Assembly: GCA_037447605.1 (NCBI GenBank)
Contig: CM074818.1
Span: 2,306,617-2,370,616 of the forward strand
DNA: 64,000 nucleotides
Reading direction: 5' to 3'
DNA from: Zygnema circumcarinatum SAG 698-1b
Lineage: Eukaryota > Plantae > Zygnematophyceae
In this document: positions 38,025 through 57,921 of the stretch, in pieces
How the letters are laid out: the number at the start of each line of letters is the position of its first letter
How positions within the stretch are numbered: position 1 is the first letter of the stretch
Notes under the pieces: generated by a model
Told to the model about the DNA's origin: nothing
The model's database searches: none
Seen by the model: the letters and a program-made list of their open reading frames with translations, nothing else
Translations under genes and position numbers: made by a program

Positions 38025-39465
38025 CCCTCTCTCTCCCCCTCTCACTTTCTTTTCTCTCTATCTCCCTCTTTTGCAGCGGGAAATTTCTGCGACGGAGTTG
38101 AGGTCTGAAATAGGAGCGATGCAGCGCGTGAGTGGCCATGGCCACGTGGTGGAGCTCTGCGGCCTCTTCGAAGACGACAAGGCTATTCACATCGCCATGG
38201 ATCTGTGTCCGGGGGGAGACCTCTTCACTTACATCAAGGAGAGGCATCGTTTGAAGGAAAACGATGCAGCACAGATCTTTCGGTATGTTTGTGTCTATTG
38301 CCAAACCTTGATACTCAATCTGAAAGTTCATCTTATGTCTCTCTGTGATAGATGATTATTTCTGGGGTCTAAGCTGAGATTTGATGATGTTGGGGTCCCT
38401 GCAGGCAGGCTGCATTGGCTTTGCAACATTGCCACGATAGAGAAATTCTGCATCGCGATGTGAAGCCCGAGAACATCCTCATCTCTAGGCGAACACGGAA
38501 CTTTGACGGAACCCAATCGGTTACGATCAAATTGGCAGACTTTGGAATTGCAATCAGGCTGCATCCTGGAGAGAGAGGAAGTGGGACTGCTGGGAGTGCG
38601 AGCTATATGGCCCCTGAGATTGTGAAGGGACAAGAGTACGGCTTCGAAGCTGACGTATGGAGCCTTGGCGTGTCTCTCTATGTTGCGCTTTCAGGTGAGG
38701 AATTCACTCCACCAAACCCATGAAATCGAGTTTTCTCCTTAAACCCCAAATTACCCAAAGGACACTTTTACAAATCATAGCGAAAAATGCTGCATTCGAT
38801 TGCAATCTGTTGTCTATAATCTAATGGCATTTTGTTGTGCAGGGTTTATGCCTTTCTGGGGTCAAAACAATGACGAGATTTTCGCGAGCATTTGCCGCAA
38901 AGGTCCCACCTTCACTGCGAACCCATGGTCGGAAATTTCCGCCGAAGCGAAGGAGCTCGTGAAGTGGATGCTCACTGAAACCGAGAGCGATAGGGCCACG
39001 CCTTGTGACATTCTGTCACATCCGTGGATCACACGCAACCGCTCCGTTCAACGCACCGCTTCGCTGTGTCCAAAGCGTGAAGAGCTCGTTCCTCGCAACA
39101 TAGAACCACAGTTGTACGGTTGCAAGCAACAGTTCCCTGCTCTGTCCAACCTTCGTATCGGCAAGGATATATCGGCACACCCCTCCCCGATATATCTCAA
39201 AAAGTCGGCACAGAGTGTCCGATATGCGCCGAGCCGCTGCAAGGGCTTGCAAGCGCCGGCGGCGGCGGCCGCAAAACTGAGCTATGGGGGCGGGGAAATG
39301 ATGGAGGAGCCCCCCTCGCCTCCGCCTGTGCTGGCCCATCCGGTCATGTCCCAATCCGACGCTTCAGAATGCTCCGCTCGCCGCCTCTCCTTGGATTGGG
39401 ATTCGCTCGACTCCATTGCGTCTTCGCCTCCTCCTTCTCCCTTGCGTTATCGGATGAGGGTGTAG
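37115..39465 (+). CDS. CDPK/PEPKR-like Ser/Thr kinase without EF hands (kinase A); exons 37115-37173 (5'-truncated at gap), 38077-38282, 38405-38694, 38843-39465
   Basis: Motifs AGKTVFKEKLK, MDLCPGGDLF, HRDVKPEN, IKLADFG, YMAPE, DVWSLGV, PFWG, HPWI; Ser/Pro-rich tail. Confidence 0.92.
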
Positions 39466-41059: not shown

Positions 41060-43314
41060 TCAACTCTCTTCCGAGGTAGAGTTGTAGTCGACCACGCGTG
41101 GAGACCGGAAGCAGAATGGCCTCGGAATCAGGCGAGAAGCCAAAGGTGAAGGGGACGACGAAGATGAGGAGGGGAGGGACGGAGACTCGCAGTGGAAAGA
41201 AACTCGCCGGACAGAGTGGTCGAATCGATCAGAGGAGGAGGAGGAGGAGGAGGAGGAGGAGGGGGAGGGGGGGGGCTTTCTAGATGGAGGAGTCAGAACA
41301 GCAGGAGGTGAGGGCGACTGGGATTCCCTAAAATCAAAGCTCAACTCCATACGAGGAGGAATGGAAGAAGGTATGATAACAGTCGGTCTGTGACGCAGAC
41401 TCGGAGAGGGAAGGCAGAAATTGGACCTAACTACGCTCTTTTCTTGAGATAGTGGCGGTGCAGGTTTGTCGCAGTTTTGGACACTTTCTCGGGTCAAGGA
41501 AGAGTCAGTGAAGCTTAGCACATTGGCCTCACTTGATTCATTTACGACGGAGAATGAGAGGTCAAAATTTCTGCCTTCTTTCGGTGACTCCAGAAGGGCA
41601 GGAGGAGGCTTTGGGAGTGGTGAGGACAATGGAGAAGGAGACCTCTTCACCGGGCAATGCTTCAGAAGCCATGGATGCTCCAAAAGGTCCGAAGCCGTCG
41701 GTCGAAGTCCGGGACTTTTCGTAAGCATGGACTGTACAAGCTTCTTTGCGTCCTTAGAAATTTCCGGCCATGGCCTTGCGCTGTAGCTCGGCTCCCTCTG
41801 ACAAATGTTTGCAAATATTTCCTCATTGGAGGGACCCCAGAAGGGCATGTACCCTGCAAACCCATCTCCAGGAACAAAAAAAATTAGTATGCTCTTGAAA
41901 TCACAACGGTTGAACATATGAAAGTAGAAGATCTACTTGAATTTGTGCTATTTTTGCAGCACAAAACCAACCATTGGTACGCACCAGAGAGAGCGACATA
42001 GAGCACCACCCCGAGACTCCACACGTCTGCCTCAAATCCGTACTCTTGTCCGTTTATGACCTCCGGAGCCATATAGCTGACAGTGCCCACGGGATGTTTT
42101 GCTTTCCTTCCCGGCTGAAGTTTTAAAGCGATTCCAAAATCGGCAAGTTTAATCTTGGGAGTTTGGGAACCATCGGGGTTGCGGATTTTCTCGGAAATTA
42201 GGATGTTTTCAGGCTTGATGTCGCGATGAAGAATGCTCTTGTTGTGGCAATGTTGCAAGGCCGATGCAGCTTGCCTGCACGGATGGAGAAACAGTAAAAA
42301 AAACAAGCGGTTAAGACATCATTCGAAAACTTCAGGACTGAAACTAGCAGAGTTATATGAAACACATTGGGGGAAAAAAAAAACTTTGTTTTTTCAGAGC
42401 TTGAAAGAGATTTATGACATGGGAGAGACCGACGTACCTGAAAATCTGTGCAGCTTCGCTCTCGCTTAAGCGGCGCCTCTCTTTAATATAAGTGAAGAGG
42501 TCCCCCCCCGGGCAGAGCTCCATGATGAGGTGCACCGCCTGCTTGTCCTCGAAGAGGCCGCAGAGCTGCACCACGTGTTGGCTCCCCGCCAACGCTTGCA
42601 TCACTCGGATTTCCGATCGAAGTTCGGCGGCAAGTACTTCCTTCTGCATGCTCGAAGGATTTCATGTCAGTGCGTGGTTGTGTCTATGTACGTGCGAGAG
42701 AGTGAGCGAGCAGAGAGGGACAGAGAGAGAGAGAGTGTGTGTGTGAAAGAGAGAGGGAGAGAGAGAGAGGGAAAGAGGGGAGAGAGAGAAGGAGAGAGAA
42801 AGGGAAAGAGGACAGAGAGAGGTAAAGAGCGAGAGATAGAGAGAGAGAGAGAGGTGCGAGAGAGCGAGAGAGGAGAAGGAGCAGAGATGGGGGAGAGAGA
42901 GAGAGAAAGTGAGAGAGGGAGCGAGAGAGAGAGAGAGAAATTGAGCAGAGTGGGACAGAAGGGGAGAGACAGGGGGGGTGCGGGAGAGATTGGCACCTTG
43001 ATCTTGTCCTTGAACACACTCTTCCCCGCCCTCAGCTTCCCCGTGTCCACGTCCTGCAGCAGCCGCACCACTCCCGCCACGCCCTTCCCCAGCTCCGCCC
43101 CCACCGAGTACACCTCCTCCAGCTCGCATGTACGGAACGGAAGAATCTGCATGGAGCTGCGCCTCTCAACGGAGGGAGCCGCCTCATGCATCGCCACTTC
43201 TGCTTCGCTTCCAGAGGCCACCGCCGCCTGCGGAGTGCTGCCACTCGTGGTTCGCGCTCCACGGGGAGACCGGAGTCTCGATGAAAGCTTTACAGTGAAC
43301 CCCATGGCTTCCAT
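41060..43314 (-). CDS. CDPK/PEPKR-like Ser/Thr kinase without EF hands (kinase B); exons 43314-42997, 42643-42438, 42274-41985, 41853-41060
   Basis: Motifs ELGKGVAGVVR, AGKSVFKDKIK, MELCPGGDLF, HRDIKPEN, IKLADFG, YMAPE, HPWL; internal exons are 206 and 290 nt, identical in length to kinase A. Confidence 0.95.
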
Positions 43315-44240: not shown

Positions 44241-45230
44241 GGGAGCGATTATTTACAGTGTACAGTAGACCCCCCCAATATTTTCGCCATGGTTTCGGCA
44301 AATATTGGGCGAAAATATTGGGTAGCGAAAATATAAGGGTGCGTGTTAACAATAGGCGGGCAGTATTATATTAAAAAGTGGTTTTGGCAAATTCAGGGCG
44401 AAAATATTAGGGAGCGAAAATAAGAGGGGCGAAAATATTGGGGGGGTCTACTGTACTTTATTCTGAATGTAGTGTACGATTTCGCCGGGCAGCAAAAAAA
44501 GGTTTTTTTGGCGAAAAATGCTGTTTCACATTTTTCAGAATAGATACAGACCTTTTTTCGTCGGATGTACGGATGGTGATTTGAAATGTACGAAGCGCGC
44601 GCGTCTACAAGGTATAAGGGCGCAACACGTGGAGCAACATAATTGGTCACGACAGCATATGACGTGGCAAGTATGTTTGGGACCGTGACGTGACGAAACG
44701 AGACGCGAAAAAAGTGGAGTCCGCGGACGGCAGTCGGAAATGGCGGGAATAAAAACTGACAGATTTTTCCTGAAACACGCTACGTTATGTGCCCTATCTT
44801 TTTCTGTCAGTTTTAATTCCGGCCATTTCNNNNNNNNNNGGCCGGAATTAAAACTGACAGAAAAAGATAGGGCACATAACGTAGCGTGTTTCAGGAAAAA
44901 TCTGTCAGTTTTTATTCCCGCCATTTCCGACTGCCGTCCGCGGACTCCACTTTTGTCGCGTCTCGTTTCGTCACGTCACGGTCCCAAACATACTTGCCAC
45001 GTCATATGTTGCCGCGACCAATTATGTTGCTCCACGTGTTGCGCCCTAATACCTTGTAGACGCGCGCGCTTCGTACATTTCAAATCACCATCCGTACATC
45101 CGACGAAAAAAGGTCTGTATCTATTCTGAAAAATGTGAAACAGCATTTTTCGCCAAAAAAACCTTTTTTTGCTGCCCGAAGAAATCGTACACTACATTCA
45201 GAATACAGTACACTGTAAATAGTCGCCCCC
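44241..45230. mobile_element. Foldback (MULE-like) element with ~390 bp inverted arms and 8-bp TSD TAGTGTGA
   Basis: TAGTGTGA at 44233-44240 and 45231-45238; termini GGGAGCGATTATTTACAGTG / CACTGTAAATAGTCGCCCCC; arms mirror around the 10-N gap at 44830-44839 with scattered substitutions. Confidence 0.8.
44263..44453. mobile_element. 191-bp Tc1/mariner-pogo-type MITE with TA target duplication, inserted in the left arm of the foldback element
   Basis: TA|CAGTAGACCCCCCCAATATTTTCGCC ... GGCGAAAATATTGGGGGGGTCTACTG|TA, a perfect 26-bp TIR; the mirror arm has the empty site. Confidence 0.88.
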
Positions 45231-46699
45231 TAGTGTGACCCATGTTTCAAACCCGTTTAATTTAACTGATTCTGTATTGAAAAATAGGTCAGGTTAGGTT
45301 AACACCCTTAACACAAATTTACCGTACTAAAAGTGGTTTCCTCAAAATCAGGCGAATTTCCGGGGAACCGCAAGTACTAACTAGGGTGGAAAATATTAGG
45401 GGGAGGGCACTGTGTTTGGTTTTGGGAAGTACGCCGTATCATCTGTGTACAATTGAATTGGAATTTTTGCTCCGGAAAATGCGGGCCCACGTGGAGAAAT
45501 CTGAAAAATGATCAGATAACAACAAAGATACTGTACGGAACAGTCATTGAGTAAAGACTGCAGAACCGTAGATTCGGATAGGATACGAACAGATCCGATT
45601 CCGGGTCCAGATCAGATATTATTGCACAAATGACAAATTGACCTGACGAGGAACAATCCCACTCACCGACCGAATCTCAAATGGTCCCAGGAAGATTTTC
45701 CCACATGGCAACGTAAATGGAACAATCATTTTCCTGCTCCCTTCAGAAAAATCACGGCAAAAAGCCCCCTCTCCTACAACTGTGACGTCACCTACCAAGA
45801 TCCCAAGCCTCCTGGTCCCCACACTCCGCCCGATATCACGTGACACTGACGTCAGCTAGCAGGTGCCGCCTCGCGCAGCCACGTGGCCCCAGAACGTCAA
45901 CCTGTACCGCAGCGGATCCTGGCGGCGTGACGGCGTAATTGGCGGCATGTCCGCCACGTGGCGGTCATGATGGCGCAGCGCGCAGTGACGGCGGGGCAGA
46001 TAGGCTGCTGCCGCTTTCACAGCGGACTCACCGCACAGGGACGGCGGAGGGGGGGGAGGGGAGGGGAGGAAGGGGGGAGGGAGTAGCGGTAGGCGGAGCC
46101 GAGAGCATCTGAATGGGGTCGGAAGAGGAAGGGAGACGGACATGGCGGTGAGTAAGGGGGCGAGAACGAGAAGCAGGACATTAGCTTAGAGAGAATAGAA
46201 ATGGAGGGGAAGGGGAGGGGAGAACGAGGGGGAAGATAAATTGAAGAGGGAGGGAACGTGGGCATGGAAGGATAGTAGCAAGGAGCAGGGTAGGAAGGTA
46301 TAAAACGTGGGAAAAGAAAAGTGTGACAGTTTTGTTTTCGTAGTGGCATTTTTTGCTGCTGGTACTGGCTAAGTAAATTAGAGAGACACTACGTGAAAGT
46401 GTCGATTTTAATTCAGCAACCATTTCAAGAACATTTGCAATAGGAAAATTGGAAAGCAGTTGGATGTATACATTGCCATAGCCATCAGAGTCATCAAAAT
46501 TGGCTGCAAACAAAACTGGCTCCCCCCCACCCTACCCCGCGTCCCCTCCCCGCCCTCACTTTGTATGTACGATGTATGTATGTGTGTGCCTCTGCCAGCA
46601 TCCTCCCCCTCCCTCCCTCACTGCCCCTCCCCTACTCTTCGCTCCGTACAAACCTACAGCGCTCTCTCTGCCGACGCTTCTACGAGCGCATGGAAGGTC

Positions 46700-47615
46700 C
46701 TAGACTAAAATGATGGCGTTGACAGCAGCGGCCGCCGGGGTGATGTACTTTGTGGGGAGGTTGTAGAAGTAGTAGTTGTTGGCGATGTTCTGTCCTGCCG
46801 GGGTCTGCACACCCGCGAGTTAAGACAGGGAAATTAGGTCGCGGGAAAGGAAATCCTTAGAGTAATTCAACAGAGCTCATGAACAACAAATCAAAGTATG
46901 AATCAACCCTTGGAGTGTCCGGTAAAAGGGTTCAGCGATCGTACCAGGATGTAAGAGCCAAAGCCCTTCACTTTTACTCCAATCGCTTTGGGGTACTTCG
47001 TCTTGAAGAAAGCGTACGCAAACGAGGAGATGGGAGGGGTCGTAGGGCCGGGCTTGAAGAGGAGGTTGATGCCCGCCCAGCTGGCAGTGTTCTTTGGAGG
47101 CTGCGGGAGGGCGGCGTAGACGTCGGCAAAAGGAGGCTTGGACGCGCCGACGGGAAGTTTGGCCTTGTTCGTAAGAAGGATCTCCGGAAGACCGTACTTG
47201 GTGGCTCCGACTCCTGACTGGAAACCGCAGAACAGGAACCAACCACTTCAGTAATCCAAGTTCCAAACGGTGCAAGGCTTCCAGAAAAAGTCCGAGAGAG
47301 GAAGGGGGGAGTGGGAGACAAAGTGAGGGAGGGGCGCTACCTGAAGGAACCCAAAGCTTCCAGGCGTCTTCTTGATCGTTTCCGCCACTAGGCTCGCACC
47401 CTTTACATAGATAGCCTTAGGTGCTCCGAAATTGAACGGCCCCTCGCCGACCAGGGTTGACGGCCACTTCGATAGGAGAGCCGCCTGGAAGTGGGCCAAA
47501 AACGAGGGAATTACGAAGGCGCGTGCTCGCACTCGATCCTCGACTAGTAAGTAACTCGAGGGAGAGAGAGAGGGGGGGAGGGAGAGAGGGAGGGGACGAA
47601 AGTGGGAGGGAGAGA

Positions 47616-47649
<34 letters not shown>

Positions 47650-48453
47650 TAGAGAGTGAGGGAGACAGGAGATGAAGCGTACCCGGAGGTACCCTGTGAC
47701 GAGCGCAGTGATGGCGGCGTCGTCCGATCGTCCGACGAAGGTGATGGGCCCCTTGAGGCCCGACCCCTTGACGGCGTCCCACGTCTTGATGGACCCGCGC
47801 AGGATGGCGCTGACTTGGGCGGGCGTGAGCGCGAACTTCGCCGGCGTTGCGGACGAGCTGAAGGCCGACACCGTCAGAATGGCCTGCGCCCAGAACCAAA
47901 AAAAAAAAAAAACAACAACCGCATAACCCAAATTCGCAATCAAAATCACAGCACATTGCAAAAACAAGAAGAAAGAAAAAGAAGACAAAATGAAAGGCAT
48001 GCAGGAGCAAAGGCGGGAAACCGTACGAAAGGGATGGTGAGTTTCGCGAAGCCTTTCTCCTCCTTGGAAGAGAACGGTCGGATGGAGGCAGCAATCTGAT
48101 AGGTTCCAGACTTGAGCCCCTGGATTCCAGCTGCAGCAAACAAACCCCAAAGCCACAAACCCTCTCGAAACCGGCATTCTAAAAATAGCTGGAATTAAGA
48201 GATTTAAATGGTCTCTGCTGCCCCTCTTTTTTCGACAGAGAGTCAATTTGATGGAGGCCTGACCGGCCGAGTTGACGCTCTCGTAGTCCGCGGGGATGTC
48301 CGAGCTCGTGGCCGCATTGTACGCCGCGATGAGCGCCTGCACGTACGGCGCGATGGTGGAGGACCCGCCGGAGAAGGCCGCGCGCGCTGAAGGGAGCGGC
48401 GCTAAGGAGAGGGCGAGGAGAGGGAGGAGGAGGAGGACGCGGAGGGCAGCCAT
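46700..48453 (-). CDS. Secreted PstS-family (periplasmic phosphate-binding protein fold) protein, copy 1, 338 aa; exons 48453-48264, 48130-48027, 47883-47683, 47484-47341, 47217-46945, 46804-46700
   Basis: Signal peptide MAALRVLLLLPLLALSLAPLPSARA, then collinear PstS-like blocks: FSGGSSTIAP, DYESVNSAAGIQGLKSG, QIAASIRPF, LTPAQVSAILRGSIKTWD, ITFVGRSDD, KGASLVAETIKKTPGSFGFL, PPISSFAY, GQNIANNYYFYNLP; all five introns are GT-AG and in phase. Confidence 0.85.
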
Positions 48454-50563
48454 GGCGGCGGCGGAGGGAGAAGGAGAAAGGAGAGAGGAGGCTGCAGGGA
48501 GGGTGGGAGAGAGGAGAGAGGAGGCGGCGGTAGGGCCGGAGGGAGGAGCTCGAGCTGCTGCTGCCTGTCCCGCTCACTCCCTCTCCGGCCGCAGGCCCAC
48601 CCTTTGTAGCTATGCCGCCGCCGCCGCCAGGCCTGTTCGAGGGGAATGCATCTGGACGCTCAACGCTCAACGGCGGAACTTGTCTTTTTGTGGTCGCCGC
48701 CAACGGGCCCCATTCTTGGGGGATGCACTTGGACAGTGTACGGCGAATCTGCGCTTCTTGCGGCAGCCATGGACACTACTTCTGACGACAAATGGAAGGG
48801 CTTACTTTTTGTCGCTCTCGGTAAAAGTGACAAATCTTGCCGTTTATTCTCGTGACGCTTTTTGCAGCGGCGCATCCGAGTGGCGGCGCCGCTTGTCGTA
48901 TAGGTATTCAATGCCAAACGAGCGAGTTCGCCATTGTCGTTTCTGAATTGGCGGGGGCCTCATACTTTGTCGTATTAGAACAACGCGACAGCGCAAACTT
49001 GTGAGCTTCGAGCGACAGTGACCGTCGCTTTTGTCATTTTTTGATGTACCAAGCGTTGGGGAAGGACAATGGTTGGCATATTATTTGAAAACCCGGTTCG
49101 ACATAATCAACACTAGGCTGAAATGGCGACCGTACGGGAGAACCGTACTTACAGTACAACTCATATGGCAGAGACGTACAGTACACGAGATTTTGAAAGG
49201 GAGACTGATAGACCCACCCCCCTTTTGGATATCCCGGCCCCTTGATTTTTTTTTTGAGGGCCAAAAATATGTTAGGTCCTGCCCGAATCCGCTCGAGCGG
49301 AAGGTCCGTCCGAGTCGCACGAGCGAGTGCGCGCGTCCTTCACACTTGGGTTGAATCTCCGCCGTCGATTCTATCACAGTTGCACCACGACAGCCGTTCG
49401 ATCTGCAGCCAGGCTCGGCCCCAACGACTGGCACGGGCCCACGTGTCCCCCGGTATGACGGTCAGACGGCGATTTCGCGGACGGCACGCGGCGGCGCTTG
49501 GACGCATCCGTACGGATATTGGTAACCGAATCGGGTTTGTACAAACCTGGTACAGTCACAGCTTCCAAGAAAGGCGGAATATTGTTTTACGAAATTGAGG
49601 GCCTGGACCAATCACAATTTGCTACGTCATAAAAAAGAACACGTGGCAGATGGTGATTAGGTGCCAGTTTTACGATAGCTGCTGGTCCAGCACTTTGTTT
49701 TGCGATCTCAGCCCGAGGGACGCGCGCACCTGCACGTGCGAGATGGACGGATCTTCCGCTCCGAGCAGATTCGGGCAGGCCCTAACATATTTTTGTTCCT
49801 CAAAAACAATCCGGGGGCGGGATATCTGGAATGGGGGGAGAGCCTATCATTTTCCTTTATAAAACGGCCTGACTTTTAAAATTTTCGATTGGAATTAGAT
49901 ACACGACACTGCGTTATCATATCCATACTGAACTTTACGAGCCAAGGCGGTAGTACGGCCAGAGGGGGTTGTCCAGCTACTGTCAATTTCGAAACGACAA
50001 GGCAACGGTCGTTTTCTCGCTAAGCTCACAATGTTGCGCTGACTCGATGTCAACGTGCAGCAGATACGACACAATTAACGGTTCAGGTGCGACAAAGTCA
50101 ATCTTTCCGTTACTGGGTACACGACAAAAAGGAACTTGCTTATTTGGCATAGTCTGACACACGCAACAAAAAGCACCGTCACTCGAATGTGCCGCCGCAA
50201 AAAGCGACTCGAGACCCGGTGGGTTGTTTGACCCCTTTGAAGAAAGCGACAAATTTGCAGAACACTGTTGAATGGCGGCCGCAGGAAGATGCGTCCCCCC
50301 GAGAATGGGCCCGTTGGCGGCGACCACAAAAAGACAAGTTCCGCCGTTGAGCGTTGAGCGTCCAGATGCATTCCCCCCGAACAGGCCTGGCGGCGGCGGC
50401 GGCATAGCTACAAAGGGTGGGCCTGCGGCCGGAGAGGGAGTGAGCGGGACAAGCAGCAGCAGCTCGAGCTCCTCCCTCCGGCCCTACCGCCGCCTCCTCT
50501 CTCCTCTCTCCCACCCTCCCTGCAGCCTCCTCTCTCCTTTCTCCTTCTCCCTCCGCCGCCGCC

Positions 50564-51369
50564 ATGGCTGCCCTCCGCGTCCTCCTCCTCCTCCCTCTCC
50601 TCGCCCTCTCCTTAGCGCCGCTCCCTTCAGCGCGCGCGGCCTTCTCCGGCGGGTCCTCCACCATCGCGCCGTACGTGCAGGCGCTCATCGCGGCGTACAA
50701 TGCGGCCACGAGCTCGGACATCCCCGCGGACTACGAGAGCGTCAACTCGGCCGGTCAGGCCTCCATCAAATTGACTCTCTGTCGAAAAAAGAGGGGCAGC
50801 AGAGACCATTTAAATCTCTTAATTCCAGCTATTTTTAGAATGCCGGTTTCGAGAGGGTTTGTGGCTTTGGGGTTTGTTTGCTGCAGCTGGAATCCAGGGG
50901 CTCAAGTCTGGAACCTATCAGATTGCTGCCTCCATCCGACCGTTCTCTTCCAAGGAGGAGAAAGGCTTCGCGAAACTCACCATCCCTTTCGTACGGTTTC
51001 CCGCCTTTGCTCCTGCATGCCTTTCATTTTGTCTTCTTTTTCTTTCTTCTTGTTTTTGCAATGTGCTGTGATTTTGATTGCGAATTTGGGTTATGCGGTT
51101 GTTGTTTTTTTTTTTTTTTTTGGTTCTGGGCGCAGGCCATTCTGACGGTGTCGGCCTTCAGCTCGTCCGCAACGCCGGCGAAGTTCGCGCTCACGCCCGC
51201 CCAAGTCAGCGCCATCCTGCGCGGGTCCATCAAGACGTGGGACGCCGTCAAGGGGTCGGGCCTCAAGGGGCCCATCACCTTCGTCGGACGATCGGACGAC
51301 GCCGCCATCACTGCGCTCGTCACAGGGTACCTCCGGGTACGCTTCATCTCCTGTCTCCCTCACTCTCTA

Positions 51370-51403
<34 letters not shown>

Positions 51404-52318
51404 TCTCTCCCTCCCACTTTCGTCCCCTCCCTCTCTCCCTCCCCCCTCTCTCTCTCCCTCGAGTTACTTACTAGTCGAGGATCGAGTGCGAGCACGCGCC
51501 TTCGTAATTCCCTCGTTTTTGGCCCACTTCCAGGCGGCTCTCCTATCGAAGTGGCCGTCAACCCTGGTCGGCGAGGGGCCGTTCAATTTCGGAGCACCTA
51601 AGGCTATCTATGTAAAGGGTGCGAGCCTAGTGGCGGAAACGATCAAGAAGACGCCTGGAAGCTTTGGGTTCCTTCAGGTAGCGCCCCTCCCTCACTTTGT
51701 CTCCCACTCCCCCCTTCCTCTCTCGGACTTTTTCTGGAAGCCTTGCACCGTTTGGAACTTGGATTACTGAAGTGGTTGGTTCCTGTTCTGCGGTTTCCAG
51801 TCAGGAGTCGGAGCCACCAAGTACGGTCTTCCGGAGATCCTTCTTACGAACAAGGCCAAACTTCCCGTCGGCGCGTCCAAGCCTCCTTTTGCCGACGTCT
51901 ACGCCGCCCTCCCGCAGCCTCCAAAGAACACTGCCAGCTGGGCGGGCATCAACCTCCTCTTCAAGCCCGGCCCTACGACCCCTCCCATCTCCTCGTTTGC
52001 GTACGCTTTCTTCAAGACGAAGTACCCCAAAGCGATTGGAGTAAAAGTGAAGGGCTTTGGCTCTTACATCCTGGTACGATCGCTGAACCCTTTTACCGGA
52101 CACTCCAAGGGTTGATTCATACTTTGATTTGTTGTTCATGAGCTCTGTTGAATTACTCTAAGGATTTCCTTTCCCGCGACCTAATTTCCCTGTCTTAACT
52201 CGCGGGTGTGCAGACCCCGGCAGGACAGAACATCGCCAACAACTACTACTTCTACAACCTCCCCACAAAGTACATCACCCCGGCGGCCGCTGCTGTCAAC
52301 GCCATCATTTTAGTCTAG
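50564..52318 (+). CDS. Secreted PstS-family protein, copy 2, 338 aa; exons 50564-50753, 50887-50990, 51136-51336, 51534-51677, 51801-52073, 52214-52318
   Basis: Reverse-complement copy of 46700-48453; exon lengths 190+104+201+144+273+105 = 1017 nt; no coding differences seen by eye. Confidence 0.85.
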
Positions 52319-54093
52319 GACCTTCCATGCGCTCGTAGAAGCGTCGGCAGAGAGAGCGCTGTAGGTTTGTACGGAGCGAAGAGTAGGGGAGGGGCAGTGA
52401 GGGAGGGGGTGTGAGTGGGCTCTGCGGCGGAGGATGCTGGGGGAGGCACACACATACCAAACATCGTACATACAAAGTGAGGGCTGGGAGGGGACGCGGG
52501 GTAGGGTGGGGGGGGAGCCAGTTTTGTTTGCAGCCAATTTTGATGATTCTGATGGCTATGGCAATGTATACATCCAACTGCTTTCCAATTTTCCTATTGC
52601 AAATGTTCTTGAAACTATGGCGTTGACTCCTCTCCCCTTGGCAGCCCCACCTCTTGCGCATGAAAGTCTCCTTGTCCCGTTTCAGCCATGGCTCCGTGTC
52701 CTTCGCCCACGCAGCTTTGCCTCCACAGTAGCACCGGCGGCAAGCTGCACAGGCGCCTTTTCTATACCACTATCTACTGGTCAGAGGTTCTCTTCGTCAT
52801 AAAGTTGCTAACATTGAATCGTCCAGTCATGCAAGTTCATCCCACCAAACTGTCTTAACGCATTGGATGTTTGCGTGGGCGCACAACCTATTGAGAGGGA
52901 AGGCGTAGATATTGCAAGAGCAAGCTGAGGGAGGAAGAAGGATGACACAAAGGAAAAATTGTTTAGTCAGTGAGGTGATTTTGCAATGTCGTAAGTTTCC
53001 TAAAATACATTGATCTCGAGCTAAGCGACAGGAAATAGTGGAAACACAAGTACGATCTAGCCTGGGCAGGGGCGGCGAGGAGTAAAGCATATGGCTGCAA
53101 AAGACACAAGAAGAAGAGTTGGAAAAAAACAAAGAATGTATACGACAACTTATTGTCTTATGTGTTGTGCTTCTATCTTCCTCTACCTCTATCTCTGTAC
53201 CTCTCTTCCTCTCTACCTTTCCATCTACCTTGTCCTCGTCCATCTTCGAGTTTTCATGGCGCCCTTCACCGGGAGGGCCGACCGTCCCAGACGAGTAGAG
53301 GCGGCGCTGCCTGCAGAGGCTCCATGCGCACTGTTCACGCAGTTCTATGGGAATTTCCCAGTTCCAGGAAACTACATGGATCTGCTGCCTGACCCGATAT
53401 TTCGATACATTACTCTACCGTAGCGTATCGGGATGTCAACTTGGCGTTCCGTGTGACAGGTTGTCGTGTCGTCCTGCAGATCTCCCACACCAACGTGGCT
53501 TTCGATTAGTGTGCCACGTGGAGTTCTAAAGACCGCAGGATACTGTTCGAACTGAATTTAGAAAAATTAAATTGCCACGTCGGCAGAATGAGCCACGTGA
53601 CGTGTCGCCGTTGGCTGGAATCTTGTGCCCTTTGAAGCTCCATGCGTGGAATGACCTGGGCCTGAACGTCTGTGAGAAGGGCTCAAACAAGGTAATTTGG
53701 TTTCATTTATTTTATTTTATTTGAATCGAAAGGTGAGGAATATTGAAATACTGTCACTCATCCATTTGCATGATTTATGGAATTTCTCAGTCTTTTTTTT
53801 CTTTCTTAAAAGAGCTTTTTTTCTTAACTCGGCCGGCCGAGTTGGGCCCAACTCTGTGCTTGCATCAAAGTTAGATTTGGGCCTAAAGCTGAAGTAGGGG
53901 GCCAGCTCCGTCAAAGGTTCGACCGGAATGTTGTAAAAAATTAACAAAGCTTAAGGCAAAAAATATTCTTATAAGCCTATTTAAAGGGTGGACTGAGCCT
54001 CCCCAAAAGGCATATAAGCCTATATCTTCTTTATACAACTTTTTTTAAGGTGGGTTGTTTTAGATTTAGATTTCAAATGTGGGTTCTCTGTGA

Positions 54094-57000: not shown

Positions 57001-57921
57001 TGAACTAGAGCTTGACCCTGAGCTTGATTCTTTAACCGGATCGTCATGTTGAGAGTTCGATCTTGATCTTGAGGCTGAGCATCTTGACGGAATTGACCTT
57101 GATCCTTATCCTCTCTCTCTCTCTCTCTGTTACTCCATCTCCGCCCTCCAGATTTCATCTCAAACTCCAAGTCTGCTTCAAAAGCTACTCTTACTTAACA
57201 ACATTGGATCAATGCTGCAGGTGAAGGTCTTGCAACCAGCAAAGAAGGCTACAAAGAGCTTGCATTGGCTGCTGTTAAGGGGTGGGATTGCGGTGTGGAA
57301 GAAGCCATCCGCCAAACCCCCGCTGACCTCATCTCAAGATCAGAAATTTCGGATCGCTGGACCCTTCCCCTCCCCGGGGCGAGGTGGGGCCGCGGTGGCG
57401 TCACAGTGCTGGGGGATGCCGCACACCCCATGACCCCAAATTTAGGGCAAGGTGGCGGCACCTCATTGGAGGACGCGGTCGTATTAGCGCGGGAGCTTGC
57501 TTCTTGCTGCACAGTTCAACTCCATACAAGTCATGGAGGGTCCAAAATGAGTGCTCAGGGAGGGAGGCAGAGGAAGGGAGCGATGGGTATGGAGGGAGAG
57601 GTGTTGAGAGAGGGAGGAGGAGGGAGTGTGAGTGTGGTGGAGGGAGAGAGAGAGAGGAGGAGAGAGGGAGAGGAGGAGGAGAGGAGGAGAGTGTTGGGAG
57701 ACGCGGGAGCCATAGCGGCAGCCTTGGAGCGGTTTGACACGGAACGGATCCGTAGAACGGCGCCGCTAACTGTGCGGTCCCATGTGATCGGGGCGGTCCT
57801 GCAGTCGGCGTTTCCCCCCATCTGCTTTTTGAGGAACAATGTGTTGGCGCCCCTTGTGATAAAAACGAAGGGGTTCTTGGAACATGCGTTGTACGACTGT
57901 GGGGCGTTGCCTGAACTATGA
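54094..57921 (+). CDS. FAD-dependent monooxygenase (plant MO/CTF2-like, class A flavoprotein hydroxylase), probably with transit peptide; exons 54094-54500, 54634-54780, 55204-55269, 55632-55797, 56521-56746, 57221-57921
   Basis: Motifs VVIVGAGVAGLATA (GxGxxG), LWGNAWKALDVLG, LLGCDGVRS (DG motif), VTVLGDAAHPMTPNLGQGG (GD motif); phases are consistent. Confidence 0.93.
56765..56845. repeat. (TGTTCA)n hexamer microsatellite in monooxygenase intron 5; a similar run lies at ~385-432
   Basis: Directly visible. Confidence 0.85.

Follow-up and report, generated by a model that had tools for sequence, protein, structure and literature searches.

Solute-binding proteins are normally parts of bacterial ATP-binding cassette (ABC) importers. 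In the genome of the zygnematophycean alga Zygnema circumcarinatum SAG 698-1b (assembly GCA_037447605.1), a stretch of 64,000 nucleotides of contig CM074818.1 (positions 2,306,617 to 2,370,616 of the forward strand; "the window," whose own coordinates are used throughout) carries two intron-containing genes for one and the same PstS-like protein. The pair was proposed in a sequence-only reading of the window, and we have followed it up by comparison with RNA and DNA read data, profile and structure searches, and phylogenetic analysis. The protein has a complete PstS-type fold in which several of the phosphate ligands are replaced, and it belongs to an old family of PstS-like proteins in green-lineage algae.

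The palindromic gene pair

The gene on the plus strand (gene B, 50564..52318) has six exons (50564-50753, 50887-50990, 51136-51336, 51534-51677, 51801-52073 and 52214-52318), giving a coding sequence of 1017 nt, which is 338 codons followed by TAG; its introns of 133, 145, 197, 123 and 140 nt all have GT..AG borders. On the minus strand lies its mirror copy (gene A, 46700..48453), all six exons of which are exact reverse-complement matches (48453-48264, 48130-48027, 47883-47683, 47484-47341, 47217-46945 and 46804-46700), with GT..AG introns of 133, 143, 198, 123 and 140 nt. The two coding sequences are identical and specify the same 338-residue protein. The genes diverge head-to-head, so that 46700-52318 runs exactly from stop codon to stop codon, and a tblastn search found no third copy in the window.

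Each gene occupies one arm of a 6.2-kb palindrome (46423-52614). Base-by-base comparison shows the left arm, with gene A (46423..48727), and the right arm, with gene B (50290..52614), to be inverted repeats of 99-100% identity; over 50307-52407 the only differences between the arms are two single-nucleotide polymorphisms ahead of the start codon and a pair of short indels within introns. A spacer of 1.56 kb (48728..50289) separates the diverging promoters and is itself a decayed palindrome centered near 49540, with pieces that are 72-90% complementary. Contigs of DNA run X11 cover the spacer at a word depth of ~58-73 where no repeat inflates the count, and the same run carries the unspliced sequence at a word depth of ~118 on the arm, roughly double the spacer value, as would be expected if each spacer comes with two arm copies. 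Between 93 and 97% of the spacer words are present in several DNA runs, drawn from three studies.

One part of the spacer, 49217-49837, is bounded by inverted ends (49217-49341 against 49715-49837, 72-90% complementary), and the DNA word depth rises to ~20,700 at 49688-49823 compared with ~60 nearby; this segment between the promoters has the look of a fragment of a repeat present in very many copies, which might be a small transposon.

For transcription, RNA contigs of three studies were compared with the region 48600-52650; such contig-based read data speak to presence, not quantity. In runs X2 and X4 the joints of RNA contigs fall exactly on the predicted borders of introns 1, 3, 4 and 5, intron 2 is missing from RNA contigs in which the pieces 50886-50990 and 51136-51335 adjoin, and removal of intron 5 is also seen in run X1. 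One X4 contig of 770 nt runs from 50454, in the 5' untranslated region, across exons 1-4 with zero differing letters, and another RNA contig spans exons 5-6 and the 3' untranslated region to ~52380. All five junctions of the splice model are thus seen in RNA, and the proposal of two six-exon genes with five spliceosomal introns, which had been made from the sequence letters and a list of open reading frames, is confirmed by the splice models, the identical coding sequences and the spliced contigs. Transcript word depths for the gene pair are 20-90. The reads cannot tell the near-identical copies apart and so cannot show that both are transcribed individually. None of the gene's words occur in three RNA runs of 2017, so expression may be conditional.

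Two further features of the RNA data concern individual borders. At the acceptor of intron 4 (51797-51805), one low-depth X1 contig uses a site 4 nt downstream (CAG|TCAG|), skipping 127 nt instead of 123 nt; this would shift the reading frame and looks like a minor splice variant or noise. At 50749/50750 there are loose contig ends, where RNA and DNA contigs that agree with exon 1 depart from it, the RNA continuing ...NS-QAGIDGVKSG and the DNA continuing into a different intron; these indicate one or more paralogues in other parts of the genome that share an almost identical first exon. One RNA contig has five differences in the signal-peptide region (50609-50634).

A PstS-type fold with a remodelled ligand site

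Exon 3 by itself gives a significant match to the Pfam family PBP_like_2 (38.9 bits, where the cut-off is 27; E 1.1e-9), and the remaining five exons, taken singly, give no Pfam match. In the spliced protein, residues 28-335 align end to end with positions 68-376 of a bacterial PstS profile of 392 positions (65.6 bits). The closest relative, P0001, a transcript-derived protein that is 57.5% identical to the window protein, scores 73 bits to PBP_like_2 over residues 21-301; against the TIGR00975 equivalog it is this relative, rather than the window protein, that was scored, and its 62.3 bits lie below the cut-off of 205. A profile built from nine family members matches E. coli PstS over its full length with E 7e-40. 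The fold was assessed on a predicted structure of P0001, for which an alignment of 46 rows gave a mean predicted local distance difference test (pLDDT) of 89.7 and a predicted template-modelling score (pTM) of 0.87; these rows were used in place of a nine-sequence alignment, from which the model was poor (pLDDT 59). The 19 best PDB matches of the P0001 model are all PstS-type phosphate-binding proteins, with template-modelling scores (TM) of 0.73-0.79, and they include the proteins of cyanophage Syn19, M. tuberculosis (PstS-3 and PstS-1), Xanthomonas (its PhoX among them) and E. coli. Cyanophage PstS (Syn19, 7xg7) is the best single structural match (E 4.7e-23, 25% identity).

The window protein is therefore one complete two-lobed domain of the PstS type (type II periplasmic binding protein) and nothing else. 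It shares the two-lobed fold of E. coli-type PstS (TIGR00975, PBP_like_2; PDB 1ixh, 9k3x), runs collinear with it from the N-terminal loop G-x-G-[AS]-[ST] through the final helix, and keeps the equivalents of Ser38, Arg135 and Asp137. DING proteins (PfluDING 2q9t, HPBP 2v3q) belong to the same superfamily and provide the best PDB sequence match of exon 3 alone. An identity as a DING protein was ruled out: the family profile matches DING at E 8.5e-16 compared with 7e-40 for PstS, DING structures rank after the PstS types for the P0001 model (TM 0.62-0.68), and the DINGGG of the mature DING N-terminus is absent from the window protein, whose predicted mature N-terminus is AAFSGGSST.

The N-terminus (residues 1-25, MAALRVLLLLPLLALSLAPLPSARA; 50564..50638, plus strand) resembles a signal peptide, ending ...PSARA before AF with small residues at -3 and -1, and would likely be cut before Ala26. 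It is the sole strongly hydrophobic stretch of the protein, with a Kyte-Doolittle mean over 19 residues of 2.15 compared with a maximum of 1.33 elsewhere. In the P0001 model, N-terminal residues 3-19 have pLDDT < 50 and lie apart from the folded domain. The protein contains zero cysteines and hence no lipobox, and the rest of it has no stretch like a membrane span, no N-glycosylation sequon and no retention signal; the calculated isoelectric point of the mature part is 9.8. Signal cleavage and secretion are accordingly predicted from hydropathy and motif rather than taken as given. A tblastn search with PstC, PstA and PstB of actinobacterial type gave no match in the window better than E 0.1. 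Unlike E. coli-type PstS, then, the window gene is eukaryotic, has five introns, carries a predicted signal of the endoplasmic reticulum (ER) type instead of a Sec or lipoprotein signal, and is without pstCAB neighbors within the window. On all these points the sequence-only reading has held: it described a protein collinear with PstS from the N-terminal loop to the C-terminal helix, with a signal-type N-terminus and no lipobox cysteine, without a membrane span or partner domain, and in a window free of pstC, pstA and pstB, and its suggested profile and structure comparisons, the latter made on P0001, both lead to PstS.

The ligand site is where the window protein departs from its bacterial counterparts. 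E. coli PstS binds phosphate through eight ligands: Thr10, Phe11 (backbone), Ser38, Asp56, Arg135, Ser139, Gly140 (backbone) and Thr141. Asp56, Asp137 and site-directed work are named in the titles of three mutant structures (1ixi, 1quk and 1pbp). Positions were mapped through a HMMER alignment to the E. coli precursor and an alignment of 47 rows, in which every bacterial row (19/19) reads [ST]-F-S-D-x-[RK]-D-S-G-T; at the same ten positions the window protein reads S-T-S-I-R-R-D-A-A-I. Two hydroxyl ligands are kept, as Ser32 for Thr10 (50657..50659, plus strand) and Ser62 for Ser38 (50747..50749, plus strand). Asp56-Ala57 is replaced by Ile80-Arg81 (50934..50939, plus strand), by which the proton-accepting, phosphate-discriminating aspartate is lost and a new arginine stands next to its position. 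The segment from Arg135 to Thr141 reads R-S-D-D-A-A-I (residues 150-156; 51289..51309, plus strand), with Arg135 and Asp137 kept and Ser139, Gly140 and Thr141 changed to Ala154, Ala155 and Ile156. The complete PstS ligand set is missed, with Ser, Ser, Ile, Arg, Ala, Ala and Ile standing at Thr10, Ser38, Asp56, Arg135, Ser139, Gly140 and Thr141. RNA contigs carry the same letters without a difference, so the replacements are not an effect of assembly or editing.

Phosphate-binding proteins of the D-type hold this aspartate in a low-barrier hydrogen bond and have nanomolar dissociation constants, whereas S-type proteins without it use two Thr/Ser residues, equivalent to Thr10 and Thr141 and polarized by an Asp-Arg pair, and bind in the micromolar range (2026 structural study, PMC13614923). 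Mutating the first of these hydroxyl residues to alanine in SphX left no binding, and the same change at the second lowered binding strongly (PMC13614923). The S-type homologues (SphX of Synechocystis, PBP-1 of Clostridium perfringens) thus lack an Asp56-type aspartate and share the Asp-Arg pair with the window protein; where they need Thr/Ser at both hydroxyl positions, the window protein has Ser32 and then Ile156, and its residue at position 56 is Ile and not a polar one. With neither the aspartate nor the second hydroxyl, high-affinity and specific phosphate capture by this protein appears doubtful, and its ligand chemistry has probably changed.

Comparison within the family places the change in one subclade. 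P0001 has the same ligand pattern as the window protein (Ile; Ala-Ala-Val), the Mesotaenium proteins have Ile at position 56 and Ala-Gly-Thr at 139-141, and P0014 has Thr at position 56 and Ser-Gly-Val at 139-141. Algal P0016, P0003 and P0005, by comparison, retain Asp56, Arg135, Asp137, Ser139, Gly140 and Thr/Ser141, and the Spirogloea proteins retain the aspartate and Ser-Gly-Thr/Ser; multidomain proteins of the family have D/E at the Asp position and S-S-S instead of S-G-T. By these alignment columns, loss of the site began at the base of the subclade formed by the window protein, P0001, Mesotaenium and P0014 and has gone furthest in the window protein and P0001, whose sites are the most degenerate of the family. 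These two agree at 71% of the residues lying no more than four positions from a ligand and at 56% of the others, which argues for a constrained, remodelled site rather than decay.

An old family in green-lineage algae

An exhaustive search of 1.84 billion representative proteins with exon 5 gave 16 matches only, and those with a named source are streptophyte algae: Mesotaenium (2), Spirogloea (2) and Mesostigma, the rest being transcriptome or metagenome contigs. Named algal members of the family include Spirogloea SM000056S17993 and Mesostigma Mv02212. The two Mesotaenium proteins, P0012 and P0024 (ME000026S04527 and ME000026S04530), are near-identical and lie three gene numbers apart on one scaffold, so that retention of the family gene as a close pair may be recurrent. 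A shape search of the ESM Atlas led to a cluster of 53 members, 92% of them eukaryotic and mostly Chlorophyta (TM 0.85). Other searches returned less: a word-indexed protein search with P0001 returned P0001 alone, a protein search with the family alignment found five proteins, and a third protein search found near-identical Nostocales PstS only; scans of genome contigs gave no relatives in one case and Nostocales only in another.

Single-domain members of the family also have hydrophobic N-termini. Other members are chains of domains, unlike the single-domain window protein: P0025/P0008 (from Mesostigma viride, a single protein of three or four tandem PstS-like domains), P0002 and P0006 have two to four tandem PstS-like domains in 1057-1802 residues, and domains 2-4 of the Mesostigma protein hardly differ among themselves (tree branch lengths 0.003-0.006). 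Clusters of the AlphaFold DB contain further long proteins with a periplasmic binding protein domain, several of which may be eukaryotic, to judge by their accession ranges. Two of these long proteins are annotated as protein kinases, A0A0L0DEK3 ("TKL protein kinase") and A0A6B0T879 ("Protein kinase"), from other organisms, with a PstS-like domain fused to the kinase; such fusions hint that the PstS fold can serve as an extracellular sensor domain.

In maximum-likelihood trees, a branch of length 0.82 with support of 100/100 sets all of the eukaryotic rows (15/15) apart from the PstS rows of cyanobacterial, actinobacterial-like and viral-contig origin. The window protein pairs first with P0001 (100/99), and Mesotaenium and P0014 join next (99/97). 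The window gene therefore belongs to an old family of PstS-like proteins in green-lineage algae and shares a clade with the other algal members. A bacterial origin of the family is plausible because the PstS fold is otherwise prokaryotic; if so, the long 100/100 branch and the range of the family across algae indicate that the transfer was ancient and not a recent import into this genome. The horizontal acquisition by this particular lineage that the sequence-only reading had put forward is not supported in that form, given the relatives in Mesostigma, Spirogloea and Mesotaenium and in a chlorophyte-rich cluster. The phylogeny which that reading had called for does set the eukaryotic rows together and apart from prokaryotic and viral ones; on its prokaryotic side it sampled narrowly, with Nostocales, a single actinobacterial-like protein and three proteins of viral contigs, too few to name a donor or to date a transfer. 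A viral origin was rejected: no relative of P0001 was found in viral contigs, and the sampled viral-contig PstS stand with the cyanobacterial proteins, across the 100/100 branch from the algal family.

In the literature we found no studies of secreted PstS-like proteins in streptophyte algae, the sole trace being a line in a table that lists, for diatoms, PstS with a signal peptide and a prokaryotic origin. What is already known is that relatives are automatically labelled in databases as PBP or PstS proteins; this locus adds an RNA-verified gene model, an identical pair in a palindrome, and membership in the subclade with the remodelled site.

Function and surroundings

The reading that we favor, and hold to be probable on balance, is that of a surface or wall protein that would close on a small ligand, binding phosphate or other oxyanions weakly, or else another ligand, and that is not a nanomolar, phosphate-specific trap. 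The ER-type signal peptide would deliver a soluble binding protein to the cell wall or periplasmic space, where the PstS-type domain would close on its ligand without an ABC permease; the remodelled site would then allow weak or unspecific oxyanion binding, or binding of another ligand, in place of nanomolar phosphate-specific capture. PstSCAB-type importers are not known in the plant lineage and, together with the absence of pstC, pstA and pstB matches from the window, this argues for action without an ABC permease, at least locally. Secretion, permease-free action and a loss or change of phosphate affinity are all steps that we infer.

Several points weigh against this reading. The backbone NH ligands, Ser32, Ser62 and the Arg-Asp pair remain in the window protein; the E. 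coli Asp56Asn mutant was crystallized with phosphate, according to the title of 1ixi; and S-type proteins bind phosphate without the aspartate (PMC13614923). The case for a signal peptide comes from hydropathy and the -3/-1 rule, the structure was that of a relative of 57.5% identity, and the prokaryotic side of the tree was narrowly sampled.

A stronger version of the favored reading, which we put forward tentatively as possible though not probable, is that of a neofunctionalized, secreted "Venus-flytrap" that has given up phosphate capture for another oxyanion or an organic ligand at the algal surface, acting as a permease-free scavenger, buffer or co-receptor, with gene conversion from arm to arm keeping the two copies identical.

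It is doubtful that the protein is instead a working extracellular scavenger or sensor of phosphate, encoded by a gene of bacterial derivation, perhaps with micromolar affinity through the Ser/Arg/Asp network, and feeding or signalling for PHT-type carriers. The complete and collinear PstS fold, the expression of the gene, the retention of five of the ten tabulated positions (the Arg135-Asp137 pair included, with Thr10 conservatively Ser) and the use of Thr/Ser by aspartate-less S-type PstS all speak for such a role. On the other hand, an isoleucine at the Asp56 position cannot accept a proton, the second S-type hydroxyl (the Thr141 equivalent) is isoleucine as well, SphX mutants with alanine at the first or the second hydroxyl lost binding or kept little of it, respectively, canonical members of the same family could cover a phosphate role, and the transfer was not recent. 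Of the sequence-only proposal of a phosphate scavenger or sensor working without its permease, the PstS fold and the lack of permease genes in the window stand, and the phosphate-specific part is called into question by the replacement of Asp56, Ser139 and Thr141 by Ile, Ala and Ile.

That the replacements reflect decay, the gene being a redundant and functionless duplicate of a canonical paralogue on its way to loss, is distinctly unlikely. Three ligand side chains are lost, a paralogue with a nearly identical first exon exists elsewhere in the genome, and the three 2017 RNA runs are without the gene's words, as decay would have it; yet both reading frames are intact and identical, transcripts are spliced and reach word depths of 20-90, a relative of 57.5% identity keeps the replaced motif (S-I-R-P-F; R-S-D-x-A-A-[IV]-T), the ligand neighborhoods are more conserved than the rest (71% compared with 56%), and the isoleucine at position 56 is common to Mesotaenium. 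Bacterial contamination or a fold-back chimera is very unlikely: PstS is typically bacterial and chimeric long reads can give near-perfect palindromes, but five spliceosomal introns are removed in RNA, arm depth is twice spacer depth, the spacer is a decayed, non-identical palindrome found in the DNA of three studies, and flanking open reading frames ~5-8 kb to either side match protein kinase and FAD-binding domains.

These flanking frames lie at 38800-39465 (plus strand) and 41060-41917 (minus strand), both matching the C-terminal part of a protein kinase domain (E 2e-8 and 2e-7) and possibly representing a second, convergent gene pair to the left of the palindrome, and at 57265-57921 (plus strand), where a FAD_binding_3 match (E 1.7e-7) probably marks an exon of a flavin monooxygenase-type gene. 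A near-perfect hairpin is found at 44452-45212, with two arms of 373 nt that are 98% complementary and 15 nt apart, and with open reading frames of 129 residues on both strands (44535-44924, minus; 44740-45129, plus).

The window gene provides no evidence for recent bacterial gene transfer, which corrects a tempting story. A permease-free, secreted family of solute-binding proteins in green-lineage algae would mean that the closest algal relatives of land plants handle nutrients or signals at their cell surface in a way that has yet to be studied. The pair amounts to a natural experiment, since some members of the family have a canonical phosphate site and here the aspartate and two hydroxyls are replaced, yet the protein is conserved and expressed; comparing canonical with remodelled members could reveal the roles of orphan binders and how PstS specificity is rewired. 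If the neofunctionalized reading is true, the pair would give the plant lineage an orphan solute-binding protein whose specificity is new.

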